From positions 1,116,001-1,180,000 of the forward strand of contig JBLDXI010000012.1 in the NCBI GenBank assembly GCA_047495785.1: a DNA stretch of 64,000 bases. Direction: 5' to 3'. The notes beneath the pieces were generated by a model that saw nothing but the letters and a program-made list of their open reading frames with translations, made no database searches and was not told where the DNA came from. Source of the DNA: Lepidodermella squamata (taxonomy: Eukaryota; Animalia; Gastrotricha). How positions within the stretch are numbered: the first letter of the stretch is position 1; every line of letters starts with the position of its first letter. This document shows positions 575 to 58,820 of the stretch, piece after piece. The position numbers and the translations under genes are program-made.

Positions 575-3500
575 TCAAACCTTAGAGCACTTCAAGCCGC
601 GGTCAACAAAACACGGACTAGCAATAGGATACGGAGATGGGCAGAATCCATCATCGGATGGAGACGCGATTTCCTCCCGCTCCTGGAATCCTTTATCATA
701 AACATTGCGGTTGAGCAGCCATGGTGGAGCTAATACAGAAGCAGGGTCGTACAGCGAATCTGTCCAGACATTCTCGAATGAATTGGCGTTAGAGAAAATT
801 GGCGGAAAGCGATCAACGTCCTGCCTCGGATCGAAGAGCGTGTTTTCATAGATCAAAGTCGCAGATTTCTTCAAGTGACTGATAAACTGAGCCGATTCTT
901 TATCAGCACAACTATCGCCATTATTCTCATCGATTGATGGGGAAAAATCACCCGAATTTGCTTGATCACATATTTCTATTTCACTTTTCGAGACCTTGAT
1001 AGTAAAAAAAAAATAGGAATATTTAAGTTGGAATATTCGCGCTTATAAACAAGTACGCGTTTTTTACTATTCGAACTTGGAAGAGATTCCAAAGCAAATA
1101 ATTGAATTTTTTTGCTCAAAATAGGGTGTGCCAAACAGCCCTAAATTTAGGGTTCCAGCTCTAAATTCGAGACTCCAGCACTAGATTTCCCTCATAAACA
1201 TGCTTTTTCGAGTTTCAAGTCTTCTTTGTTATCTCAATTATTTTGTTATCCTGCCTAACCAATAGATCTTCATATTACGCGTATTTTGCGGTCAGTTAAT
1301 GAGTTATACTTCAGCCTGCAGAGCCGATATCGATTCCATGTATCGATTTTACAAATCAGTGATTTTTCGTGGAACCCAACATCGCTAATTTTTCTACGTA
1401 ATTTAGGGCACCAGGTAGCTAGCATGTAAAATCCTAGGTTCAGGGAGGGCATCAGTATCGATCAAAAAACGAAAACGCCGAAATCTCAAAAAAACATGAA
1501 ACATTTAGAGACAGGACGCTTAAATTTAGTGCTGGAACCTCATTTTATGTGGTGCAAATATTTGGACCCCTTAAAATATTCTATTTCGAAGCTGAGTACA
1601 GTTCATACAGTTTCACCTGGTAGGAAAAAAGCGATTTCAGCGAATTTTATTGGGTGATGAAGTAATAGGAACCTTTCAGAAAGGTCAGGAAGCTCAAGAT
1701 TCAATTGAAATTATAAAATCAAGCAAAAATAATAGTTATTTTTTTATAGGGAATATGACGAGGCCAGATTATTTTTCCAACCCAGTGAAGTTGAGCCTTC
1801 CTCAGTTTCATGCGTGAAATATTTTGAGCGAAATTACCAATAATCCGAATAGTAAAAAATGCGTACTTCTTCAAGTACTCCGATAAAAATCAAGTGGAAT
1901 TTTCTTACACTTAATTTGGGATTTGAGGCCGTCTTCTCCTCTTGTTGAAGGGCGCCGATTTGTTGCATGAGCACAGCGACGACAATATTAATGAGGATGC
2001 TATATATTAAAAAAAATAAATGAAAAAAAATAATTGAAATTTGGTAAAAAAAACTCACAATTGTGAAAGTAGGACAAATGACATGAAATAAATTGGGGCG
2101 AATGCATGAATAATGTTACACGGAAGAACAGCCTTTTTCGAGCAAAATTTGTTGTCACCCGACATTCTAAGGATGTCCTTCAAGATCAGATTCCAATCAT
2201 CGCCCGTGAAAACTCTAAATAACGTAAGTGCTGCCATGCCGAAATTCTGAAAATTAGCATGACGCGACAGGCCGATGCAACGCTCGTAGGTACATTCGAA
2301 TCGCCCGTACAACTGAACCCCCAACGAGCCGTAGATGAAAAACAGCAATATGAAGAGAATCGATAGGTTGATGACTTGAGGAATTGCCGAGCTGACAGTG
2401 TCTAGCAAAACATGCAGACCCGTCGCAGCTCGCCATAGCTTAACAACTCGAGTTATTCGAAAAATTCTGGCGACTCTAACAACAGACGGCGATAGGTATG
2501 TAAGTTCAACATTGAAATTTTCCAGGTAAACAGCGACTAGGGATGAGGTGGTTATCGCCGCGTCTAATTGGTTCCATTTATCGCTGAGATAGCCGCAAAA
2601 GCCCATCGCCAGCATTTTAAGCAGCATTTCAGTGACTAGAAGGCCGAGAAATACGTAACCTGTTATTGTTATCGTATCTTCAAGCCAAGGCGGCATCATA
2701 TAGAACTCAACAGCCATGGATAACACGTTGATTGCCACGGCGGACATGATGAAAAGCTCGAATTTAGGATGAGTCACAAAATTAATCAAACCACGCCTCC
2801 AGGCAGGTTTCACTCGACTGGAAGCTCGGCCTCGACATCTTAGCCGGCAGGTATAATTCGCAGGCTGATTGCTTCTCTCAGGTTCATTCCTATTCATTTT
2901 CTCGGTGGTCTTTTGGAAATTATTTACAACGACCCCGACAAACATGTTGAGGGCGAAGAAGCAGACGATGAAGAGGAATGAGATGAAGTAGGCGTAGGCC
3001 CACGGGTTCGAGTTGTGAACCGGCGATAAATCCGGCCCGACGCAATCCGCCCCAGCCCGGGCTATCTCGCTCCAATCATCTAAAGTCGCTAGGATAAACA
3101 GGGTAACAAGGGCGTTGGGGAATGAGTTGAAATTATAGGAAGATATCTCCCAGTCGTAGCCTCTAGCCAGGCATTCTTCACGAGATTTAACACTGTCCAG
3201 CAGGATAGCCGTTTGCGACGATAGGTCTAGTGATGTACTCAAGTTACTTCCATAGGCGCGAATATCATAGCCCCTTGGCAGGAAGCATTTCGCAAAACAT
3301 CCGCTGAAAAGCTGGACGCCCAAAATGCCGAAAACGCCGAAGAAGAAGAAGCAAATCAGAGCGATGTGGCCGATAGGTTTTATAGAGACAATCAAAGTTT
3401 TTAGAACTATCCTCAGCCCACGAGCTCTTGAGATGAACCTCAATGGCCTCAAGGCCCTGAGAAGTCGAATCGGACGAAGGGCTAGAAAAATTGACTGATT

Positions 3501-6500
3501 TACCACGGTCCCTTTAAGCAAGTCTAGAGCTACGTCCATCACCGAAAGAAGAAGCAGGAAAAAGTCGAGGATATTAGCCGGATTTCGGAGGTAGGCACCC
3601 CTTTGAAATAGAAATCCATCAGCGATACTCTTGCATATCATCTCAAGTAGGAAAGCTCCACCGATGACGTAGCCGGCAACTCTCTCAAATTGCCGCTCGA
3701 AATCACTCATTTCCTCGCGTTCAATGCTAATCAATACGCAGCTGAAAATGGTTACAATAATGTAGAATGTGTCCCATATTGGCGAGGTTACAGCTTTTTT
3801 AAGGCGGATGCGAATGCAGTTGCGAGGTGGGAAGATGAAAAATGACGATTTGTTCGATCTACAGCACAAAATGTTAGCAAGGTTTCGCCTGATGTACCTC
3901 CCGACAGATAGAGCTTTCGCGATTGATTTGTGCCTGCCTAGCCCAGCGGTCTCCAGCTTAATTTTCGCCTCCTCCATCGCCTTGATATGCGCTTCGAGTT
4001 CTTCCTCTTGTTTGCTGCTGAATCCCTCGACTAGGATACCGACGATCAGGTTGAAAATGATGTAATCGCCGATGGCGACTAGGCCTACGAAATAGATGGC
4101 AGCCCATGCGCCGGTGTAGAACATGCCGTCACGCATGACTGTTGCCCAATTGTCGCGAGTGATGATCTGCAGCACGGTGAATAGCGATTGAAATATTGAG
4201 TCGAAATTAGCATGGGAGCAGTGAGATACAGCCACCATTTCCCCTCCTTCAGACGTCATTGTTACGTTATCGTCATCGTTGTAGGATAGAACCTTGAATT
4301 GGCATGGTGGTGGGGTAGCTGCTGGGATTGCCGTAGGACGTTCGCAGAATTTACAGCCGAAAAGGCTCAAACCCAACAACGCGACAATGTAGAGGAAAAA
4401 CCCGAATAGTAGGAAAAACGTCGTCACATTATCAACAGTATGGAGCATCAGCATCAACTGCTTTTGCAATGATGGCATAAAGCGGAGGATTTTGACTAGG
4501 CGAACTAGCCGGAAAAGCCGTAGTACCGCGAAACCCGATGTTGTATCGCCACTTTGGTTATTCAGAATCTCCACCACGCTGAATAGGCTAATGAATTTCA
4601 ATCTCTTGGTACATTTTTTACCTACTTAATGATAATAACGGCAGCATCGAGCAAGTTGAAAGCTTCTCTCAAGAAAGCTGTGGGTCCCAAAGCGATGAAA
4701 CGAATAGAAAGCTCTGCCAGAAAAATGCCGGTAAAAACCAGATTAGCTTGTTCGATCCATTGAGTCAAAGTAGCGGACTGCAAAAGCATTATGTTACCAA
4801 ATGAATCACCTTTGAATGGTGTTAAAAGTGTCAAAATTAAAATTTTAAAATTTCAAAATTATTTCAAAAAATGAGGGTGCCCCTAAAGCCCCTAAAATAT
4901 TGTTTTTCAAAACTAACCCTAACACTTATCTTAACCAATAAAAACCTAGCAATTCGTGAAAAACTTCAATTTCAAAAATTATGAGCCAAAAATTAAAATT
5001 AATAATTACAAAAAAATTGAAATTTTGTAAAAATTAACTAGATATAAATTTGAAGGGTTGTACGACTTTTCAGCAGTGACATTTCAGCAAATGAGGGTCA
5101 AATGAGCAGTGACTTTTCATCAGTGACAAGTCAGCAGCGATTTTTGTTAATTTTTCCTATATTTTTTCAAACTTATTATTTTTATCTCAATGACATTTGC
5201 GCAGTGACATTTCATCAGGAGAATTTTAGCCACCCTAAGCAGGGGGACTATGCGCTACATTGAAGTCGAGCTCAAAAAGTGCAAGGTCAATGCCCAAGAT
5301 TAATAAATAAAAATTGACGAAATGTCACTTGCTCATTTGTCGCTGCTGAAATGTCACTGCTCACTTGTCTACATGAATCATTTAAATTGATACAAAAATT
5401 GGATTTTTATGGATTTTTCACTGACAAGGTGTCACTGATGGAAAGTCACTGCTGATTTGACCCTCATTTGCGGAAGTGTCACTGCTGAAAAGTCTGACCA
5501 CGAATTTGAAGTTTTTGCTTGGAAAATCAAAAAATTTCAGGAATTTTTGAAATAAATAAATAATAAACGTTAGCAAATTACTTGTCCATGATGCTCGAGG
5601 CCCATTACGACGGCATTGAAGATGATGAGAATGCCAGTGAAAGCCTGTACAAAGGCACTCTCTAGACCTTTCAGAGTGCCATTCTGAATAGCGAAAACGC
5701 ATCTCCAAATCAATTCTGTCAAAAGGTAAAATACACAGCGGAAATTATAGAGATTATAGAGATTTTAATTTCGAACTAGTTTTTCGAAGATTTTGTAACC
5801 GTTCCTTCTCCAATCGCTTCGCCTCGCAAACGGGACATTTATCGCCGCCAAATGAAGCAGTCCGGATGGAAGGTGCCAAGCAAAGCCGCCGGTCATTCGT
5901 TATTTCCAGTTTAATCACCAGTGATTCAATGTGGTCTGTTTTTCGGCAAAAGGTTGACGCGAAGAAGCCGCGAACCTGGCGTGCGATGTGTCCGAAAAGC
6001 TTGAAAATTTGAGCGTAAAGCCCGTTCGAGTAACTTGAAACTGATTCCAACGTCGATACTGAGACCAAGTCGTCTTCAGTGCCATTATGGACATGTGTTT
6101 TACGACGTTCGTAACGCTTGATAAAATTTGGATTAGTTCAGGCCTAAAACCCGCGAATTCAACTTACGATTTGTTCTCGAACTTGCATTCTAGTTATCGC
6201 AAATTGAGCTGCGATGACAACAAGGCAAAGCTTAACGGCAAAGTATGAGCCAAGCTGTATTGAGAAGAATTGGACCTTTAGGACCTTTGTGAGCTCTTTA
6301 ACACTTACGAGGAGCAATATGACGAAGTAAGTCCACGTCCAGAATGAAAATCCATCTTGCAAATAGTTCATAATATCGACCCAGCCTTCGAGCGAAACTA
6401 CCTGGAAAATCGATACAATAGCGTAGCCGAAGTTGTCGAAATTGGTAAGTCCATGTGCCGGGTTCGGTCCTTCAGCTCGGCACTCTGAGTAGTGATTAAC

Positions 6501-10182: not shown

Positions 10183-11752
10183 TTAGGCAGTCTTGACGGT
10201 GACGGGCTTGACGGCATTGGCGATGTTGCCGTAGACGTTGCTGCCACCGAAGACGTTGCCGTAGACGTTGCTGTTGTTGAGGGCAGCGGCGGTGAGCAGC
10301 TGGGACGACGAAACCGGCAGCTTGGCGATCTCCTCGGCGCTCAGCTTCGGCAGCTCGGCCTCGATGGTCAGGAAGCCGTTGGCGTTCAGCTGCGACTTGA
10401 GCTCAACCTTGGCCAGGTCGACCTTGGCAAGGGTCTGAGAAGAGATACAGTTAGCATTTCAAGTTGGAAAAAGTTGCTGAATAGCTCACCTCGGGCAGGA
10501 CGAACTTGCGCGAGTACTTGCGGGCGACGGTGTGCTCCTTGCCGTCCTTGGCCTCGTGGGCAGCCTCGACGACGACGGCGCGCTCGGCCTTGTTCAGGGT
10601 GACGGCGACTTCCTCAGGCTTGAAGCCCTTGAGCTCAAAGGCGAGGAACAGCTGGCGGTTGCCCTGGTTGTCGACGTACTGCACCGGGTTGGTCAGGGTG
10701 TAGAGCTCGGCCTGGCTGGACGGGCGGAAGGCGATGTTGTACAGCTTGTCGGCGGCAGCCTGCGAGTTGGCGAGGCCGTTGATGTTGCCGCCGAAGAGAC
10801 CAGCCTGGTTGGCGAAGGTGTTGGCACCGCCGAAGGTGTTGGCTCCGAAGTTGTTCAGCTGGTTGCCAGAGAACTGACCGTTGAAGGCAGCGTTGCCACC
10901 GAAGAGGCCAGAGAAGTTGTTGGCACCACCGAAGAGACCGTTGTTGTAGACACCAGCCAAGCTGTTGACGTTACCACCGAAGTTGTTGAACTGGTTGGCA
11001 CCGAAAAGGCCGGCATTGTAGCTGTTCAGGCCACCGAACAGACCGTTGTTGAGGGCGTTGAAGCCGCCGAAGTTGCCAGCGATGTTGGCACCAGTACCGA
11101 AGGCGCCGCCGTTGATCTGGGCAGCGACACAGGCACCCAGCTTGGCACCTGCCTGCGAGATGATCGTGGCGCCGATCTGGGCGACGACCTGGTTGTTGGC
11201 AAAGAAGGCACCAGCAGCGGCAGCCTGTCCGCCGAGCTTGGCAGCCAGAACAGCGGCCAACTGGGCGCCGGCCTGAGCACCCCACTGGGCACCCTGTTGG
11301 GCGGTCGACTGAACGCCGAATCCGGTGGCGGCGGCGAAGACGGCCAGTTGGGCACCCAACTCGGCGACGACCTCGGCGCCGTAGGCAGCTCCCAGCTGGG
11401 CGGCCCACTGGGCTCCGAAGGTGGCGTTCAGCTGGCCGGCGATGGCAGCACCCAGCTGAGCACCGTACTCCTGGCCGATCAGGGCGCCGATCTTGGCGCC
11501 GACCTGAGCAGCGACGTTGTTGGCGTTGATCTGACCGCCGACGAGGCCGTTGTTGTAGGCACCAGCCCAGTTGTTGACGTTACCGCCGAGAACACCACCA
11601 AAGACGTTGCTGTTGACGCCGAAGCCAGTGGCAGCCGAGGCGGCGTTGATGCCAGCGAGACCAGATTGGTTGTATTGGCCGAGCTTGGCAGCAAGACCGT
11701 CGAAACCAGCCGACAGGACGGACGAAGCGTTGTTAGCGAAAGAGCAGGCCAT
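10183..11752 (-). CDS. Giant sHSP subtype A, copy 1 (504 aa; exons 11752-10490 and 10434-10183)
   Basis: Starts MACSFANN, followed by a GAxx repeat domain, GLFG/N-rich repeats and an alpha-crystallin domain (FELKGFKPEEV...YSRKFVLPE/...LNANGFLTIEAELP), ending VKPVTVKTA. One 55-nt GT-AG intron. Confidence 0.92.
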
Positions 11753-30363: not shown

Positions 30364-31054
30364 CTAATTTTTAACCCACTAAAATAACAGATGAACTAAT
30401 TTTTCCAGAAAAAATGGGCTGGAAAAGAGGGACCATCGCGCTGTATTATAAAAAAGGCCTCTATTATTCTCAATGAATGGATCCGGTGCGTAAAAAGCAC
30501 GCGTAATTTACCTTGAGACACACATATGATATAGCGCTTGCTATTCATCTCGGTAAGGTGGTATGCGGTCGAAAAAAATTCTTCTTGCGAGAGACTAGCG
30601 CGAAAAATCTATCGAATTTGTTGTTTTTACGTATTGATTTTCCTCTAGGCGTTCTGAATATCTGTTTTATTATCATTAAGAACTTGAGTTTTTTTCAGAT
30701 TTTTTTTAATATACGGCTGATTTTTGAAGACTCAATTTTCTTTTATTCTCATTTTTCAGTCTTTGGTTCGGAAAAAAAACAAAAATAAAAGTTTTTATCT
30801 GAGAAATGTTTGTGAAAATCTGAATAAAGGCGAAGGTGTGCGTCATTAATTAATAATTACGACAAAAACGTGATGTGTTTGAATAATAAATGATCGCCAA
30901 GTTTTTTATTGCAGAATCAATAAGCTGCACATGGAAAATCTCATTTGCTAATCTCTTCGCAAATGAATCGCACCTGTGCGTGTAATATTCGAACCCGTGT
31001 GTTCGAGCGCGATAATGCACCTATCATAGACAATAGTTTAGATTTCTAGACAAA

Positions 31055-32229
31055 ATGGTAACGATTGCCAGAACGCCGTCGACAGCAGATGGGCCCGTTA
31101 TCTACATCAGCCACGCCCCAGATTTCGATGCAGAAATCGGCCGAAAATTAGCTCAATGGTTGAGGGCGACGAAGCGCTTCAAAAAAGTTGAATTGCCAAA
31201 AGGAAGCACGATTCAGTCGTCGAAATTATCGGCATCTAATGTAAAAAAAAAAATCCCAGTAATCCGCCTTAAAATTTGCAATAAAATTATTTTCAGGGCT
31301 TGCAATACGCTGATTTGGTTCTTATCTGCTACAACAATTCATATTGTTTGGACGAAAATTGCATGAAAGAGTTTCATTTTGCTCATAACAAGAAAATGCC
31401 GATGTTACTGCTCGACACTGAACAATCAATGAAGAACAAGCCTAATACCGAAATTTTATACCGAATCGATTTGCAAAGAAATCTCATCGACGTCGATTTC
31501 TCCAATGGAATCAAAGAATTCGAGAAAATCCTAAACTCAATCATCCGACTGTTGAACTGTGAACTTTTCGACGAATATTCCCTCTACAAATTCACATGTG
31601 TTATCGACGTCGCTGATCGGCTTGGTTTCGAACCGATCTTCCCACTCGCCCTCGTCGTTGTAGGAGACAAAAAAGAATCTGAGAAATTCTGGCTTTACAA
31701 TCCTTTGATCAACAACAATGCATTTCGCTTGAAGAAAGACGAGCGGTTGAAGTTGGACCTTGAGTTCAACGAAGATATCGGCAAGCCGTTAACAGTTCGC
31801 GTTGATCATTATGTTTACGGCGGTCAACATCTCGATATCAGTGCGTTTCTCGAGGCTATAGAGCTTACACCGTGTTTCCAATTGGGGGTTAAGCATGAAT
31901 TCTCGTTTGGTACAAAAGGATCGTCGTTGTCATGGTCAGATGGCGATTGGCTAATTTCATGGCTATGCATCGATGATCAACTTCGCATGGAAGCTCAATT
32001 TAGCTTGGTATTCTGTGGAGTTTATGGGGAATCTCAGTCCGAGTTAATCGATGTGATGCTGAGACCTGGCGCAAGTGATTTTCATCTCGTGTCTCTGCAA
32101 GAAAATATTGGGAAGTTCTTGAATATCCGGATGAGGTGCAGCGAACCTGCTAGTGATGTTTTAAAAATTGTCTACCTCAAACTTCATCACCTGAAAACCA
32201 AGACAGATTATATGTTCAATTATGGCTGA
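31055..32229 (+). CDS. TIR domain plus two putative PLAT/LH2 domains (372 aa; exons 31055-31240 and 31297-32229)
   Basis: TIR part reads VIYISHA...GLQYADLVLICYNNSYCLDENCMKEFHFAHNKKMPMLLL. Two beta modules follow: LVVVGDKKESEKFWL..EDIGKPLTVRVDH..FLEAIEL and LVFCGVYGES..RPGASDFHLV..ENIGKFLNIRM..YMF. Confidence 0.75.
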
Positions 32230-32285
32230 TATTAAAATACATTTTCGGAAACTGAATTCAACTGAATTTCACACTCGAGCAATTG

Positions 32286-32452
32286 TTCACGTGAAAGTCA
32301 TTTCACGTGGCCTTTGACCTTTGGATTGACACCAAATAAAAAATAGCATCATAATAAAATCAGCAGGTGATCTGGACCCATTGTTGTTGCTATTTTTAGC
32401 ATGTCTCACCCGTGCCGCAGCGCGCGCCAAAATCCGAACAAGCGCTATAAAA
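32286..32452 (+). promoter_or_regulatory. Promoter of sHSP A2: two CACGTG E-boxes, a DR1-like motif, a MEF2-consensus site and a TATA box
   Basis: ttcacgtgaa and ttcacgtggcctttgacct; CTATTTTTAG at 32390-32399; TATAAAA at 32446-32452. Confidence 0.55.
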
Positions 32453-32558
32453 TCCGCTTGAAACACGGGGCCAATTCATCATCAATCAATAGCAATTTCT
32501 CAGCTTTCTAGCTTTCGTTTTGTCATATTTTTCCGCTCGTGTCTAATCACCTACAAAA

Positions 32559-34093
32559 ATGGCCTGCTCTTTCGCTAACAACGCTTCGTCCGTCCTGTCG
32601 GCTGGTTTCGACGGTCTTGCTGCCAAGCTCGGCCAATACAACCAATCTGGTCTCGCTGGCATCAACGCCGCCTCGGCTGCCACTGGCTTTGGCGCCAACA
32701 GCAACGTCTTTGGTGGTGTTCTCGGCGGTAACGTCAACAACTGGGCTGGTGCCTACAACAACGGCCTCGTCGGCGGTCAGATCAACGCCAACAACGCCGC
32801 TGCTCAGGTCGGCGCCAAGATCGGCGCCCTGATCGGCCAGGAGTACGGTGCTCAGCTGGGTGCTGCCATCGCCGGCCAGCTGAACGCCACCTTCGGAGCC
32901 CAGTGGGCCGCCCAGCTGGGAGCTGCCTACGGCGCCGAGGTCGTCGCCGAGTTGGGTGCCCAACTGGCCGTCTTCGCCGCCGCCACCGGATTCGGCGTTC
33001 AGTCGACCGCCCAGCAGGGTGCCCAGTGGGGTGCTCAGGCCGGTGCCCAGTTGGCCGCTGTTCTGGCTGCCAAGCTCGGCGGACAGGCTGCCGCTGCTGG
33101 TGCCTTCTTCGCCAACAACCAGGCCGTCGCTCAGATCGGCGCCGCGATCATCTCGCAGGCTGGAGCCAAGCTGGGTGCTTGCGTCGCTGCCCAGATCAAC
33201 GGCGGCGCCCTCAACAACGGTGTGTTCGGTGGCCTGAACAGCTACAACGCCAGCCTCTTCGGTGGCAACCAGCTGAACAACTTCGGTGGTGCTTTCGGCG
33301 GTAACGTCAACAACTTGGCTGGTGCCTACAACAACGGCCTCTTCGGTGGTGCCAACAACAACTTCTCTGGCCTCTTCGGTGGCAACGCTGCCTTCAACGG
33401 TCAGATCGCTGGCAACTTCGGCGGCCTCTTCGGCGGTGCCAACACCTTCGCCAACCAGGCTGGTCTCTTCGGCGGCAACATCAACGGCCTCGCCAACTCG
33501 CAGGCTGCCGCCGACAAGCTGTACAACATCGCCTTCCGCCCGTCCAGCCAGGCCGAGCTCTACACCCTGACCAACCCGGTGCAGTACGTCGACAACCAGG
33601 GCAACCGCCAGCTGTTCCTCGCCTTCGAGCTCAAGGGCTTCAAGCCTGAGGAGGTCGCCGTCACCCTGAACAAGGCCGAGCGCGCCGTCGTCGTCGAGGC
33701 TGCCCACGAGGCCAAGGACGGCAAGGAGCACACCGTCGCCCGCAAGTACTCGCGCAAGTTCGTCCTGCCCGAGGTGAGCTATTGAATCATTTCCAACTTG
33801 AAATGCTAATTTTTCTTTATTTTCAGACCCTCGCCAAGGTCGACCTGGCCAAGGTTGAGCTCAAGTCGCAGCTGAACGCCAACGGCTTCCTGACCATCGA
33901 GGCCGAGCTGCCGAAGCTGAGCGCCGAGGAGATCGCCAAGCTACCGGTTTCGTCGTCCCAGCTGCTCACCGCCGCTGCCCTGAACAACAGCAACGTCTAC
34001 GGCAACGTTTTCAGTGGCAACAGCCAGTACGGCAACAACGTCTACGGCAACATCGCCAATGCCGTCAAGCCCGTCACCGTCAAGACCGCCTAA
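32559..34093 (+). CDS. Giant sHSP subtype A, copy 2 (493 aa; exons 32559-33773 and 33827-34093)
   Basis: Near-identical to copy A1 apart from indels in the FG/N-rich repeats; same intron position. Confidence 0.92.
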
Positions 34094-34831
34094 ATAACCT
34101 ATAAATTGAAGCATCTCAAACTTGAAAAACTTTCATGCATGATATTGGTGTGCTTATGTTGCACGATTATGTTCATCTGAATTGAAACACGGTCTAAAAT
34201 ATTTCAATCGCAATAAAAGTGTTGTGCAGATTTTAATGAGTATACAATGACAATCGACCTATTTGGAGGCCTGAGGATGACCCATGTCGGAGGTGACTGG
34301 CATAAGAATTTTTCAATCTTAGTTGGAGCTTTGAGGACTGATTTAGACCATATTTACAGGTAACCTCAAATTACAAGGCATTAACACACAACATAATATG
34401 TTGTATAGGTCTCCATTGCTCAGAATAATTTCGATAGCCTGATAGCATGCACTTTTCCGCTCCATTAAAAATCTCTAATGCGGTTGTTTACAAAGCTAAG
34501 CCAATAAAAATGTTTCGCAACCATTCATAGCCCGAAAATTACTTAGGCCTTTATCAATAGGTAGAAATAATAAATGCACCTCAATTCCAGTGCAAATGTC
34601 TTTTAGCGCCTAAATTAGTCTGCAAAATACACGATACACCCATTGAGAGATAGTAATCAGAAAGAAAAATATCTCGTCGTTGCCAGGTTGTCGGCTCTTA
34701 CCATTTCAATGGCTATTCTCCTATTAATAAGGGAGAAAAATTAATATCAGCCCTACCCGTTGATTAAATTTCGTCATTTTTGCCGTGTTAAAAAGATTGT
34801 TTTTTTCTCGAATTTCCACATCATCGTGTAA

Positions 34832-37805
34832 ATGACTGCGGTGGTGAGTAATACAGCTCCATTTCGAGACCGCCAAAACTCGACGGCGCCACCGCCGACG
34901 GCTGTGTTTCGAGACCGCCAAAACTCGACGGCGCCACCGCCGACGGCTGTGTTTCGAGAGCGACAAAACTCGACATTGGGGGTGAACAACAACAATAACA
35001 ACAACAATGGCGCCGAAATTAGAGATCGAAAAAATTCATCATTCATAAATAATGAACAGCGCTCACGTTCGCCGGATCCGGAATCGTCGCTGAACAACAC
35101 TCAGGTATATTACCTCATTGTTATTTTCCCAAATTAGCCAAAAAAATCTGTGAGAAAAACTATAGCATTATTTTTCATCCATTTTTTGTTTCAAAATGAG
35201 GCTAATATCAGGTAATTCAGCTGTAACTTTTCATGAAAACGTAACAGTGAGATGCTACCAAAAGGTTACAATTGATTTTTAATCATTTTTTTTAATTATT
35301 TTTCTGATCTGTTTGCAGGAGCAGATTCTCGTCCCGCGGCCGAAAACCATGTTGGAAAGGCGGCGCGTCAAATTTGCTCTGGAGACTAAACCTGAAAATC
35401 AGCGACTTTTCATATCATCTGCACGTAAGAAAATGCAAAACTTGCACGATCTATTGGATACGGATAAAACCTATGAGCTTTATGTGGCACTGGCTTCGCG
35501 AGTGATAACAGACGTCGAGCAACGCGACCCCGTGAGTCACCTGACGCCGCTGAACAAGGTCTGCTGCGGATTGCCGTCGTGGGACGTGCGTAAGCGCCAT
35601 TTATGGATGAAGATTTTCATCAAATTCGGCGCTAACTTGAATGCGATTGATGATGAGGGTCGTACGATTTTGGCGCAGTTGATTTTGGCCGAAAAAGAGG
35701 AATTATTTTGCCTGCTGGTCGAGGCCGATTTGAAAGCCACGCTGAATTTTACGCTCATCGATAAGGATGGAAATAATCTTCTGCATTTGGCGGCTTATCA
35801 TTGGCTCAAAAAAGCAACGAAGGTGCGTTTAAAAAATTATTAACAATTTCCATCTTTCGAAAATTAATTATTTTTTGTAATATTTTGATCGCAAAGAAAA
35901 TTAGCGCAGATATCATAATTTCTTCAAATGGGGGTCTAAATATTTGCGCCGCTAAATTTATGCTTCCTGGCAATAAAAATAGGGTCACACCATTATCGGA
36001 AATCGGAACCAAATTAAAGAATTTTTCGCCCTAAATCACCCTTTCTGAATTTTCTGTAATTTCAAGATTGATTCTATAAATCCAAGTCTTATACAGAAAA
36101 CCAGGGAGAATTTTAAATCAATTTATTTTGATTTTTTCTTAATAAATCTGGAAATTTAAAAAAAAAATGAGCAAATAGAGTTTTAAGCGAGTTAATTATT
36201 TGAAATTTTGTTCCACTAGCAATTTTTAGTTCCGCTAAAAGTAAGACCTCTAAAAATCGCTCCGATTCTTTGCGATTTGACTGTCTCTCTTTTCTTAATC
36301 CGCCCGCTTGACCCTGCGATTTTTTTAGATGCCTGGTACCAGGTAACATCAGCTAGTAATGAAAATTTTCAATCTTGGCTTTTAAGACTGTTGATATCGG
36401 AAAAATCACTGATTTGTAAAATCGATACTTGGAATCGATATTGTCTCTGCACGCTGAATTATTACTCGTAAGCTGACTGGTTATCGCGCAAAATTAGTAA
36501 AAAGATCTATCGGTTTGGCATGATAAAGAAAAGTTCAGATCCTATGTGAGAAACTTTAAAATAAACCATAATCATCTACCCAAAATATTGTGCTGGGAGC
36601 CTCAAATTTTAGTGTGAACTCTGAGGTGTCACCAAGTCTCACCAAGAATTTCAAGCATTTTTCGAGAACATTACAAATTGCGCGGATTTATACGACAATT
36701 TTCTTCGATTTTATCGGTCAGTCATAAAAAAATTGCGTAATTCTAGAACGTGTTATGTTTCATGAAGTATGGAAATACTTATGCGTTTATGTGAAATCCC
36801 ATAAAATTATTCTAATTTTTATTATTTTTCACGTTGAAATGTAAATTTATCACACTTCAGATAATATTGGCGCGAACTGCGGGTTACGGCACTCCTCTGC
36901 ATGAAGCGTACAACAATACAGGCCAAACGGCGTTAATGATCGCGTGCGAGAACGGCGACATTGCGCTGGCTTGCGATCTCGTTGAAGCCGGTGCCGATTT
37001 GACGATTCGCGAGTCGAATTGCCGCTACGGCTCGCAGATGGCCATCGAAATAATGGCAACAACGCTGTTGCGCAACGACATTCAACGCAAGTACACTATC
37101 GTAAACGACGACGGTATCAAAACTATTCTCGAGCGGCTAATCCGCCTTTCGTGTAAATACATGACGGCAGCCGGGCAGCTGGCTAAAATGGGCCGGCTAT
37201 TACGCTGGTGCGCCACGTCCGTGTTAGGCCAGGCGAAGGCGCGCCAACTCTGTGAAGAATTCCGCCCGAAACGCCCGCCGCAACTCCTCGTCTACAACGG
37301 CCCTATGCCGAAATTACTCGCGCCACCGTCGGCCCGCCAGCCGCGAAAATCAGCCTCCTCAAGCAATAGCAGCTCCGTAGCCAGCCCGGCTGAGCCGAAC
37401 GACGAGATGATGTTCAATTTGAAGGCATTTGATCTGCCACCTGAGGGTAACACTCAGCCGCGAGTTGGTGACGCAGCACCGGCGCCCGAGCAAACACAAC
37501 CGGCGTCTGTTGTCTATTCGCTGCTTGATATTTATTCTTTTATGTGGACGCCCGGCTGTACGGTGAATGCGCCAAAGTTGGCCGATCGCATCCGCCCGCA
37601 TGAGCATGCCTATTTGTTGAACGCGTGTATAGAACGGACGGAGGAGGATGGCGACTTGAATGCGAGTGACGGCGGGTCGCGCATGACGCACAGCCGCGCG
37701 TCCATTTTCGGCAAAGCCGGCAAACAGCTGAGCATGTTCAGCAGACTGAAACGAACCGCATCGAGCACGAAATTCAAAGGTCCAATTCCAGAAGGCACCA
37801 TGTAG
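34832..37805 (+). CDS. Ankyrin-repeat protein with an N-terminal RDRQNST repeat (at least 3 exons: 34832-35104, 35319-35822, 36861-37805)
   Basis: Motifs GANLNAIDDEGRTIL, DKDGNNLLHLAA and GQTALMIACENGDIALACDLVEAGADL, with GT-AG phase-0 junctions. Confidence 0.75.
34862..34974 (+). repeat. Coding 45-bp tandem repeat (2.5 copies)
   Basis: tttcgagaccgccaaaactcgacggcgccaccgccgacggctgtg starts at 34862 and 34907, with a partial copy at 34952. Confidence 0.9.
35929..36625. mobile_element. Family B element (reverse orientation) in an ankyrin gene intron
   Basis: ggggtctaaatatttgc and aaaatcactgatttgtaaaatcgatac.tggaatcgatat match the reverse complement of about 1326-1570. Confidence 0.6.
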
Positions 37806-37904: not shown

Positions 37905-38144
37905 GCCGCTCTGAAAGCGACTGACCCCTCCGGAAGTGGCTCTAATTAAAGAACCACCAGGCCAGAACGTTCATCAACGGCCGCCTCGAGACTAGCTACC
38001 GGTGAAGGTCGCCGGGCTCGTGTGGCCAAGTTCGCGCTCAGGGCCAGTCACCACGCCTCGTCATCGCGGTTTGGGTTTGTCGTCAGATGAGGCTGACGTT
38101 GGGGCAAAACTTAATAAAGTAATGATCCCAAGAAGTATGATCTT
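37905..38144 (-). ncRNA. U3: U3 snoRNA (about 240 nt)
   Basis: The minus strand reads AAGATCATACTT (box A'), GGATCATT (box A), CCGC-GATGACGA (box C'), TGAGCGCGAA (box B), TTGATGAACGTTC (box C) and TCAGA-GCGG (variant box D plus terminal stem). Confidence 0.88.
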
Positions 38145-57496: not shown

Positions 57497-58820
57497 TTAG
57501 GCAGTCTTGACGGTGACGGGCTTGACATCGTAGGAACGGCGGTTGATGGCGTTGATGCCACCGAAGGCCTGGACGGCGGCGTTGAAGCCTCCGAAGGCGG
57601 GCAGCTTGTTGTACAGCTCGGACATGGTCGGGCACTTGGCGATCTCCTCGGTGGTCATCTTCGGCAGCTGGCACTCGACGACGAGGTGGCCCTCCTGGGT
57701 CAGGCACGACTTGAGCTCAACCTTGGTCAGGTCGATCTTGGCGAGGGTCTATCAAGAAAACGGATCATTAAAGTTATGAGATTAAGTGAAAAGTGTTTTC
57801 TCTTACCTCGGGCAGGACGAACTTGCGCGAGTACTTGCGGGCGACGGTGTGCTCCTTGCCGTCCTTGGCCTCGTGGGCAGCCTCGACGACGACGGCGCGC
57901 TCGGCCTTGTTCAGGGTGACGGTGACTTCCTCAGGCTTGAAGCCCTTGAGCTCGAAGCACAGGTACAGCTGGCGGTTGCCCTCGACGTCGATCATGCGGA
58001 TCGGGTGGGTCAGGGTGTAGAGCTCGACCTCGGAGGACGGGCGGAAGGCGATGTTGTACAGCTTGTTGTCAGCCGACAGGTTGTTCGACCAGGCGTTGGC
58101 GCCGAAGGGACCGAAGGTGGTCGGGTAGTTGATGCCACCGAAGCGCTCGAACGAGCCGGTCCAGTTGTTGGCGAGGCGGGCGGCGTTCCAGGTGTTGGAG
58201 GCACCACCGAAGCGCGACTCGGCGACGCGGGCGGCGATGACGTAGCACTGCTTGGCGCAGACGTCGGCGAAGAGCTCGGCGCCGATGCGGGCGGCGAACT
58301 CGGCGGTGTAGATGGCACCCAGGCGCTGGGCGATGATGGCACCCAGTTCGGCGCCGTGCTCGGCTCCGAAGGTGTAGCACCAGCGGGCGCACTGCTCGAC
58401 CGGCCAGCCGTTGACGAGCTTGACGGCGAGCTCGGCACCCAGCTTGGCGCACATCTCGGCTCCCCACTGGGCGCCGATGCGGACGGCCACCTCCTGGCCG
58501 ACGAAGGTGTTGAGGCGGGCGGCGACGATGGCGGCCAGCTGGGCACCGCACTCGGCACCGAAGACGCGGCCGGTCTCGGCTCCGCACTCGATCGGCGAGG
58601 CGAAGGTGTTGTAGGCGACCGGGGACGAGACGAAGGTGTTGTTGATGCCAGCAGCAGCGGCGAACGGGGTCGGGACGGCGGCGTTGATGAGGCTGCGCTC
58701 AACAGAAGACGGCGAGTAGATGTCGACCTTGTTGCGGAGCAGGCTCTCGACGTTCATCGGGCTGGTGTAACCAGCAGCAGCGGCGAAGGTTGAGGGGATC
58801 GAGGTGTATGAGCAGGCCAT
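57497..58820 (-). CDS. Giant sHSP subtype B (421 aa; exons 58820-57807 and 57748-57497)
   Basis: Starts MACSYTS, then a Cys/Glu-containing GAxx repeat domain and the same alpha-crystallin domain and intron position, ending DVKPVTVKTA. Confidence 0.92.

Follow-up and report, generated by a model that had tools for sequence, protein, structure and literature searches.

The 64,000-nt stretch analyzed here (the window; GC ~44%), from the genome of the microscopic freshwater gastrotrich Lepidodermella squamata, carries at 32559–34093 an intact, spliced and transcribed gene, designated A1, for an oversized small heat-shock protein (sHSP), three times as large as is usual. As a functional gene, A1 belongs to an sHSP family that is amplified and strongly biased in codon usage. 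The other members in the window are A2 (10183–11752), B (57497–58820) and B' (47–253). A1 is assigned to the sHSP superfamily by its defining feature, the alpha-crystallin domain (ACD), and it lies outside the usual size of these proteins and contains a domain for which searches gave no known relatives; its N-terminal architecture is unprecedented. The best explanation of the data as a whole, to which we give about an even chance, is that of a constitutive, amplified and oversized sHSP that is multivalent and builds large assemblies.

Gene structure and transcription

A1 encodes 493 aa (405 + 88 codons) on the forward strand, with exon 1 at 32559–33773 (ATG at 32559) and exon 2 at 33827–34093 (stop codon at 34091–34093). 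Between them is a 53-nt, phase 0 intron (33774–33826, +) that starts with GTGAGC, ends in a TTTTCAG acceptor and lies inside the ACD. A first-pass annotation, made by a model from the sequence letters, had correctly placed a gene in the interval 32559–34093 and had left the intron unmentioned. Public contigs were mapped over 31000–35500. The intron is spliced out (GT..AG, joint 33773>33827) in contigs of three runs (X2, X3 and X5), and independent confirmation of the splice model comes from the uninterrupted mRNA contigs of environmental relatives (see later), in which the sequence LPETLAKVD is continuous over the site of the A1 exon junction. Since the intron of a neighboring gene is also removed in X2 (joint 35101>35316), this run was counted as RNA-like. 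Contigs of X2 match with at least 99% identity at 32507–32627 (5' untranslated region and gene start), 32655–32783 and 33108–33239, so the N-terminal region of A1 is transcribed, and the earlier concern that it might be absent from transcripts is answered.

From its N-terminus, A1 begins with a G/N/A-rich lead (residues 1–79; 32559–32795, +) that has only two charged residues and holds GGNVNNWAGAYNNGLVGG, which is repeated in the later G/N/F tract. Next are a domain of Gly/Ala tetrads (residues 80–214; 32796–33200, +) with the register G-A-polar-hydrophobic and a period of 4.0, and a G/N/F low-complexity tract (residues 215–318; 33201–33512, +). Residues 319–405 (33513–33773, +) comprise the pre-ACD motif FRPSSxxELYTLTNP and the first half of the ACD, ending ...FVLPE, and exon 2 supplies the second half (TLAKVDLAKVELKS...LPKLSAEEIAK) followed by an N/Y/G-rich C-terminal extension (33827–34063, +). 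The protein ends with VKPVTVKTA (34064–34093 with the stop codon, +).

Of the paralogs, A2 encodes 504 aa (421 + 83) in exons 11752–10490 and 10434–10183 on the reverse strand, and its exon 1 is 97% identical to that of A1. B encodes 421 aa (338 + 83; exons 58820–57807 and 57748–57497, −) and is 51% identical to A1, and B' is a further B-type gene of which only exon 2 is present (47–253, +), the window edge cutting the gene. The annotated picture of paralogs at four sites, three of them complete and 420–505 aa in length, agrees with these sizes (421, 493 and 504 aa), as does the shared ending VKPVTVKTA, which is the C-terminal end in all four. The duplication that separates A1 from A2 extends over the gene and ~300 bp of promoter only.

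The alpha-crystallin domain and C-terminal motif

Against a gathering cut-off of 20.8 bits for the Pfam HSP20 family (PF00011), exon 1 of A1 alone scored 26.3 bits (profile positions 11–65 of 102), and the end of exon 1 scored above the cut-off in all three complete genes, A1, A2 and B. Exon 2 alone had no match in Pfam. A family profile in which the exons were entered as separate rows matched solved metazoan ACDs at E = 4e-11 to 1e-8 over profile positions 37–146, with both halves of the domain matched in the structures of C. elegans SIP-1, HSPB1 and alphaB-crystallin (CRYAB). The arginine/LP context of strand beta7 (vaRkysRkfvlP) aligned with vaRefhRryrlP of HSPB6. By these alignments the ACD is complete, of metazoan type and divided by the intron between two exons, and the single C-terminal ACD previously attributed to each protein is well founded in both the HSP20 and the structure matches. 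The terminal V-T-V within VKPVTVKTA aligned with IPIKTVA, VPVKT and P[IV]T[CT]K in the relatives and is conserved in position, and it is a candidate IXI/V-type anchor; the prior label of an IxI/V-type oligomerization motif holds to that extent, the residues themselves reading V-T-V. At 421–504 aa the proteins exceed the 12–43 kDa range of sHSP monomers, size being a descriptive and not a structural criterion.

A canonical and complete ACD, closest to those of SIP-1 and HSPB1, is also what would be expected of an ordinary holdase with an unusually long client-binding N-terminal extension, stored at a high level (e.g., in oocytes, eggs or resting stages, like Artemia p26 and SIP-1) and assembling into no gel or scaffold by itself. 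Clients of sHSPs are usually bound by aromatic-rich N-terminal extensions (PMC9458469), the family is highly expressed without known stress (see later), and tardigrade sHSPs are reported to be highly expressed and to limit desiccation-induced aggregation (PMC9887055). However, a conserved, duplicated helical domain and a 104-aa chargeless tract would not be needed by such a protein and are not seen in characterized holdases, and some 45–58 ACD-sharing copies exceed the usual need for a chaperone. We regard this alternative as somewhat unlikely.

The Gly/Ala domain

The annotated block of about 130 aa with Gly or Ala at every fourth residue, conserved in both subtypes, proved to be 135 aa in A1 (residues 80–214; A46, G21, Q18), with 39% identity between subtypes A and B. 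The power of small residues at period 4.0 was 3.79 in A and 6.56 in B, compared to maxima of 2.99 and 2.51, respectively, in 500 shuffles. In B, where the composition is Gly/Ala/Glu with eight Cys, a ~63-aa module is present twice in the domain as an internal duplication (22/41 identities between the halves, E = 8e-12), and the same signal is weaker in A. AlphaFold2 models built on a three-sequence alignment gave four helices in the B domain (H2–29, H32–62, H67–96 and H99–130; pLDDT 72, pTM 0.61) and four in the A domain (pLDDT 62), and the domain is predicted to consist of two copies of a helical hairpin, making four long helices. Of the regions compared between A1 and A2, the ACD has had a dN/dS of 0 since the duplication and the Gly/Ala domain one of 0.13, against 0.61 for the G/N/F tract, all from small counts.

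Searches for relatives of this domain were negative. Pfam returned nothing for the A domain at E values up to 10, including the Gly-zipper families, and for the B domain only a chance match to Yae1_N (E = 0.048). There was no homologue among PDB sequences, and in a profile search of 1.84 billion representative proteins the Gly/Ala columns met only tetrapeptide-repeat proteins, such as bacterial VGAQ/VWDQ arrays, and all of these were rejected as homologues since they are matches of repeat composition. A word index of 5.8 billion clusters gave no relative of A1 exon 1 among the 8000 candidates listed, which were filled by low-complexity words, and none of the B-type domain, whether queried within exon 1 or alone. 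In the ESM Atlas a feature search yielded nothing usable, and none of 198 pattern matches in JGI metagenome contigs was confirmed by tblastn. At the level of fold, the Atlas search retrieved generic helical proteins, mostly membrane helical bundles at TM-scores of ~0.5 or less, the best Foldseek match in the PDB had E = 0.59, and the best VIA-align wide match had Z = 8.0, under the ~13 given as the noise level for helical bundles. A likeness to copper-storage four-helix bundles, prompted by the eight Cys of B, was rejected since these Cys have no conserved counterparts in subtype A. By these searches the domain is treated as undescribed and looks lineage-specific, as had been proposed for the protein family, and among the sequences compared it occurs solely in subtypes A and B of the L. 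squamata genome, as an addition to the sHSP.

Small residues at a period of four raise the alternative of a membrane-active sHSP, in which GxxxG/AxxxA 'glycine-zipper' helices would insert into or coat membranes in the manner of lipid-binding sHSPs and membrane glycine zippers, and the nearest ESM Atlas shapes, with TM-scores below ~0.5, are indeed mostly membrane helical bundles. The domain is not, however, predicted to span a membrane, because its maximum KD19 is only 1.46 in A (1.29 in B) and each tetrad has a polar residue, which in B is charged (E/R/K). In addition, no glycine-zipper family of Pfam matched even at E = 10, and the folds retrieved are generic, with Z no higher than 8 and so below the helical-bundle noise. 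This alternative is very improbable.

The G/N/F tract and the rest of the N-terminal extension

The N-terminal extension is ~340 aa in A1 and ~275–345 aa across the complete family members of the window. In the 104 aa of the G/N/F tract of A1 there are no charged residues, 28 Gly (27%), 23 Asn (22%) and 12 Phe (12%). Exon 1 as a whole has 4 GLFG, 5 LFGG and 13 FG; all four GLFG and most FGG motifs fall in this tract. This matches the nearly uncharged G/N/F/A region with GLFGG/NFGG repeats that had been assigned to subtype A. Indels distinguish the tract of A1 from that of A2, and in subtype B most of it is missing, a short aromatic/Gly/Asn linker taking its place. By composition, the long extension is prion-like and aromatic-rich, as in Hsp42-type sequestrases. 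No hydrophobic core of the kind found in signal peptides was detected (maximum KD10 of 1.1–1.3, compared to 2.6 in a neighboring secreted protein), in line with the earlier statement that a signal peptide is absent.

A chargeless tract of 104 aa with GLFG/FGG about every 10 residues in Asn/Gly spacers could also suggest a relation to FG-nucleoporins, with binding of transport receptors or a selective phase like that of the nuclear pore complex. No nucleoporin domain or Pfam FG family is present, however (at E values up to 1, Pfam gave only HSP20 and a chance Sigma70_r4_2), and the term 'nucleoporin-like' used in the first-pass annotation is therefore apt for the composition, GLFG/FG in uncharged spacers, and not for any family relationship. 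There are only four GLFG motifs, the tract is missing in subtype B, and related sHSPs carry other aromatic repeats (PSTFGGN, WPSTF), so that FG looks like one form of a family-wide 'sticker' composition. This alternative is extremely improbable, the least likely of those considered. Hydropathy, the charged tetrads and the lack of a family match thus disfavor the membrane explanation, and the lack of a nucleoporin match and a subtype B without the tract disfavor the nucleoporin one.

Relatives in environmental samples

At E values of 1e-10 or lower, the profile search of 1.84 billion representatives recovered 33 proteins, whose matches are confined to the pre-ACD and ACD columns. Those looked up are annotated as hypothetical or 'IbpA' and come from mRNA-sized contigs of ~1.1 kb in JGI and Logan environmental samples, and the closest are sHSPs of ~230–370 aa from environmental metatranscriptomes. 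Nine of them (P0001, P0003, P0004, P0008–P0010, P0013, P0016 and P0027; 230–350 aa) share 38–71% identity with the window proteins over the pre-ACD and ACD. Like the window genes, the environmental relatives have FRPxSxxE[FY][YW]TLxNPI, LP[KR][ML]TxEE, a terminal P-[IV]-x-x-K and an MA[SC] start, and their N-terminal extensions of 100–200 aa carry aromatic/Gly/Asn/Pro repeats (PSTFGGN, WPSTF). As FG or aromatic repeats are found across the relatives, FG-type repeats are a trait of this sHSP clade. In contrast, the Gly/Ala domain is lacking in all nine of the proteins named above, and each of these is shorter than those of the window. The 5' ends of the mRNA contigs of the relatives have no shared leader. 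Among the other matches are proteins with several ACDs: P0002 has two (373 aa) and P0011 has six in tandem (600 aa). Multi-ACD sHSPs are known in some invertebrates. A literature search turned up no relevant work on sHSPs of gastrotrichs or on sHSPs with FG repeats.

Promoters, codon bias, copy number and expression

Upstream of A1 is a TATA box, GCTATAAAA (32444–32452, +), ~110 nt before the ATG, which lies within a ~230-bp promoter block that is near-identical in A1 and A2. Two CACGTG E-boxes, at 32288 and 32304 (32288–32309, +), are 16 nt apart in a near-palindrome ~250–270 bp upstream of A1; one conserved counterpart is found upstream of A2 (12012–12017) and none upstream of B. A search for trimeric heat-shock elements (HSE) found none near A1, A2 or B, and the E-boxes are candidate sites for basic helix-loop-helix factors in place of HSE. 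The GC content at third codon positions (GC3) of the sHSP genes is 0.80–0.93, compared to ~0.49–0.63 in neighboring open reading frames (ORFs). Extreme GC3 bias in an AT-rich genome had been noted, and the bias stands, but the window at ~44% GC is not strongly AT-rich; its GC content and short introns agree with the L. squamata assembly, which is reported to have 43% GC (PMC11660948).

In the DNA run X1, the summed contig depth was ~73 over the flanks, 3200–4260 over the ACD and 560–780 over the A-type front end, i.e., ~45–58 and ~8–11 times the flanks, corresponding roughly to tens of ACD-sharing copies and some 8–11 A-type copies. In X2 the ACD reached a depth of 2x10^5, against 2–25 in neighboring genes, and in the RNA-like runs generally the ACD depth was 10^3–10^4 times that of neighbors; the parts specific to A1 had an ordinary depth of 13–83 in X2. 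Expression and copy number are poorly measured by summed contig depth, which comes from contigs and not raw reads, so only the family-level order of magnitude is meaningful. The huge depth over the ACD arises because many other paralogs, with at least 90% nucleotide identity, pile up on this conserved domain, and the very high expression is shown at the level of the family and not for A1. The description of the proteins as 'very abundant' is thus upheld for the family-shared ACD (~2x10^5 in X2) but not for the parts specific to A1. The family is expressed without any known applied stress.

Synonymous divergence (dS) between A1 and B drops from 0.5–0.8 in the N-terminal extension to 0.05 over the first half of the ACD (33513–33773 vs. 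57807–58067), which points to gene conversion or concerted evolution of the ACD in paralogs that have otherwise diverged, or to a very strong constraint on codons.

Gene amplification, extreme codon bias and the family-level abundance of transcripts would also fit a recruited structural or bulk protein, with the sHSP used as building material in the cytoskeleton, in association with muscle or in an epidermal matrix. Precedents are the lens alpha-crystallins and the sperm outer-dense-fiber protein ODF1/HSPB10, which forms structural fibers via repetitive tails, and Gly/aromatic repeats resemble the glycine loops of structural proteins and elastomers. The sHSP genes are, moreover, interleaved with another amplified, GC3-rich gene, which encodes a basic secreted protein (see later). 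Without a signal peptide, however, a component of cuticle, scale or eggshell is excluded by the classical route, and the ordinary depth of A1-specific parts also speaks against bulk use; we consider a structural role decidedly unlikely.

Proposed assembly

In the explanation favored here, that of multivalent assembly, the ACD would dimerize through the beta6+7 strand, and the C-terminal V-T-V would dock in the beta4/beta8 groove of neighboring dimers, as in other sHSPs. The N-terminal extension would add two modules for self-association: F/Y/W 'stickers' set in Gly/Asn spacers, and a helix-packing domain of small residues. A protein with this many contacts could form large higher-order assemblies, possibly of mixed A and B subunits, in the form of sequestrase-like inclusions, condensates or a gel, and its function would be constitutive and developmentally set, not a classical heat-shock response. 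The first-pass annotation had suggested a scaffold or gel, perhaps a dormancy matrix, of two co-assembling subunit types. In a stronger version, A, B and more abundant paralogs would form a cytoplasmic material, a cohesive FG/Asn hydrogel or glass cross-linked by ACD dimers, V-T-V docking and Gly/Ala packing, and thus an sHSP-based structural or protective matrix without a described counterpart, built around a newly evolved domain; this version is doubtful.

Several points weigh against multivalent assembly. The mechanism is drawn from composition and analogy, the products of exons 1 and 2 entered the searches as separate sequences, and the structure models of the Gly/Ala domain, with their three-sequence alignment, are of moderate to low confidence. 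The lack of a canonical HSE leaves stress induction via other factors possible. The ordinary depth of A1-specific parts and the family-level nature of the pile-up on the ACD, with the limits of contig depth given above, count in the same direction, and the DNA library used for the copy estimates may be amplification-biased towards GC-rich DNA (PMC11660948). The dN/dS between A and B (0.75–2) is uninformative because dS is suppressed, the synonymous sites being constrained or homogenized.

Comparison with known systems

With metazoan sHSPs (HSPB1, alphaB-crystallin, HSPB6 and SIP-1; PF00011) the window family shares a single C-terminal ACD of metazoan type, the beta7 pattern R-x-[FY]-x-R-[KR]-[FY]-x-[LI]-P and a hydrophobic-x-hydrophobic tail motif. 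It differs from them in length (421–504 aa, compared to ~150–250 aa), in the ~275–345-aa extension with its duplicated helical domain (fold predicted) and long uncharged repeats, in promoters without HSE, and in having tens of copies. Yeast Hsp42 and the sequestrase-positive sHSPs of C. elegans resemble it in having a long Asn/Gly/aromatic-rich N-terminal extension before the ACD and a long C-terminal extension, and by this likeness a role in organized deposition or assembly is plausible here too (PMC9458469, PMC13287201). In C. elegans, sequestrase activity goes with long Phe-rich N-terminal and C-terminal extensions (PMC9458469), and Hsp42 is reported to use a prion-like N-terminal domain (PMC13287201, citing Grousl 2018). 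Unlike the window family, Hsp42 is encoded by a single gene and lacks the Gly/Ala four-helix domain, and there is no sequence relation outside the ACD. The GLFG nucleoporins Nup98 and Nup116 share an uncharged tract with GLFG/FG in Asn-rich spacers, whereas A1 has no nucleoporin domain or family match and its tract is short (104 aa, four GLFG) and joined to an sHSP. HSPB2/HSPB3 exemplify condensate-forming sHSPs without induction by heat (PMC13287201); their extensions and those of ODF1/HSPB10 differ from those of the window family, they are vertebrate-specific, and orthology is not claimed.

As a rule sHSPs are small, and it is the disordered ends that determine oligomer size and client binding. 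In the window family the N-terminal extension has gained a conserved domain for which no homologue was found, its fold predicted, together with nucleoporin-style repeats, and this in tens of copies. If multivalent assembly is correct, the family would show, as a natural experiment, how a chaperone becomes a material or a sequestration phase, would bring a new helix-packing domain with a strict four-residue Gly-Ala-polar-hydrophobic register, and would open a first molecular approach to the cell biology of the phylum Gastrotricha, on which almost no molecular work was found in the literature. If the proteins are ordinary holdases, they would be a lineage-specific expansion of modest interest.

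Neighboring genes and repeats

Between A2 and A1 are two copies of a gene, 86% identical (13699–14229 and 20435–20938, both +), whose secreted product is very basic and has Ser-X stripes and KKHGGK repeats. Their GC3 of 0.81–0.84 is a bias like that of the sHSP genes, which no further gene in the window shows. A U6 snRNA gene (21238–21343, +; 115 bits) is found ~300 nt downstream of the second copy, and a U3 snoRNA gene (37905–38144, −; 94 bits) ~3.8 kb downstream of A1. Ankyrin-repeat genes at 14679–16837 (−) contain internal direct repeats of 158–219 nt in two families, D1 and D2. Two inverted-repeat pairs, 24649–24871/25537–25759 and 16766–16978/17408–17620, have arms of 213–223 nt that are 91–92% complementary and 430–665 nt apart, and may be transposon ends or hairpin-forming elements. 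Downstream of A1, the ORF at 34832–35137 (+) contains a tandem TAPPPTAVFRDRQNS repeat and a poly-Asn run; 34978–35012 was left out of contig mapping as a repeat, and in the gene downstream of this ORF an intron at 35102–35315 is confirmed by contigs.

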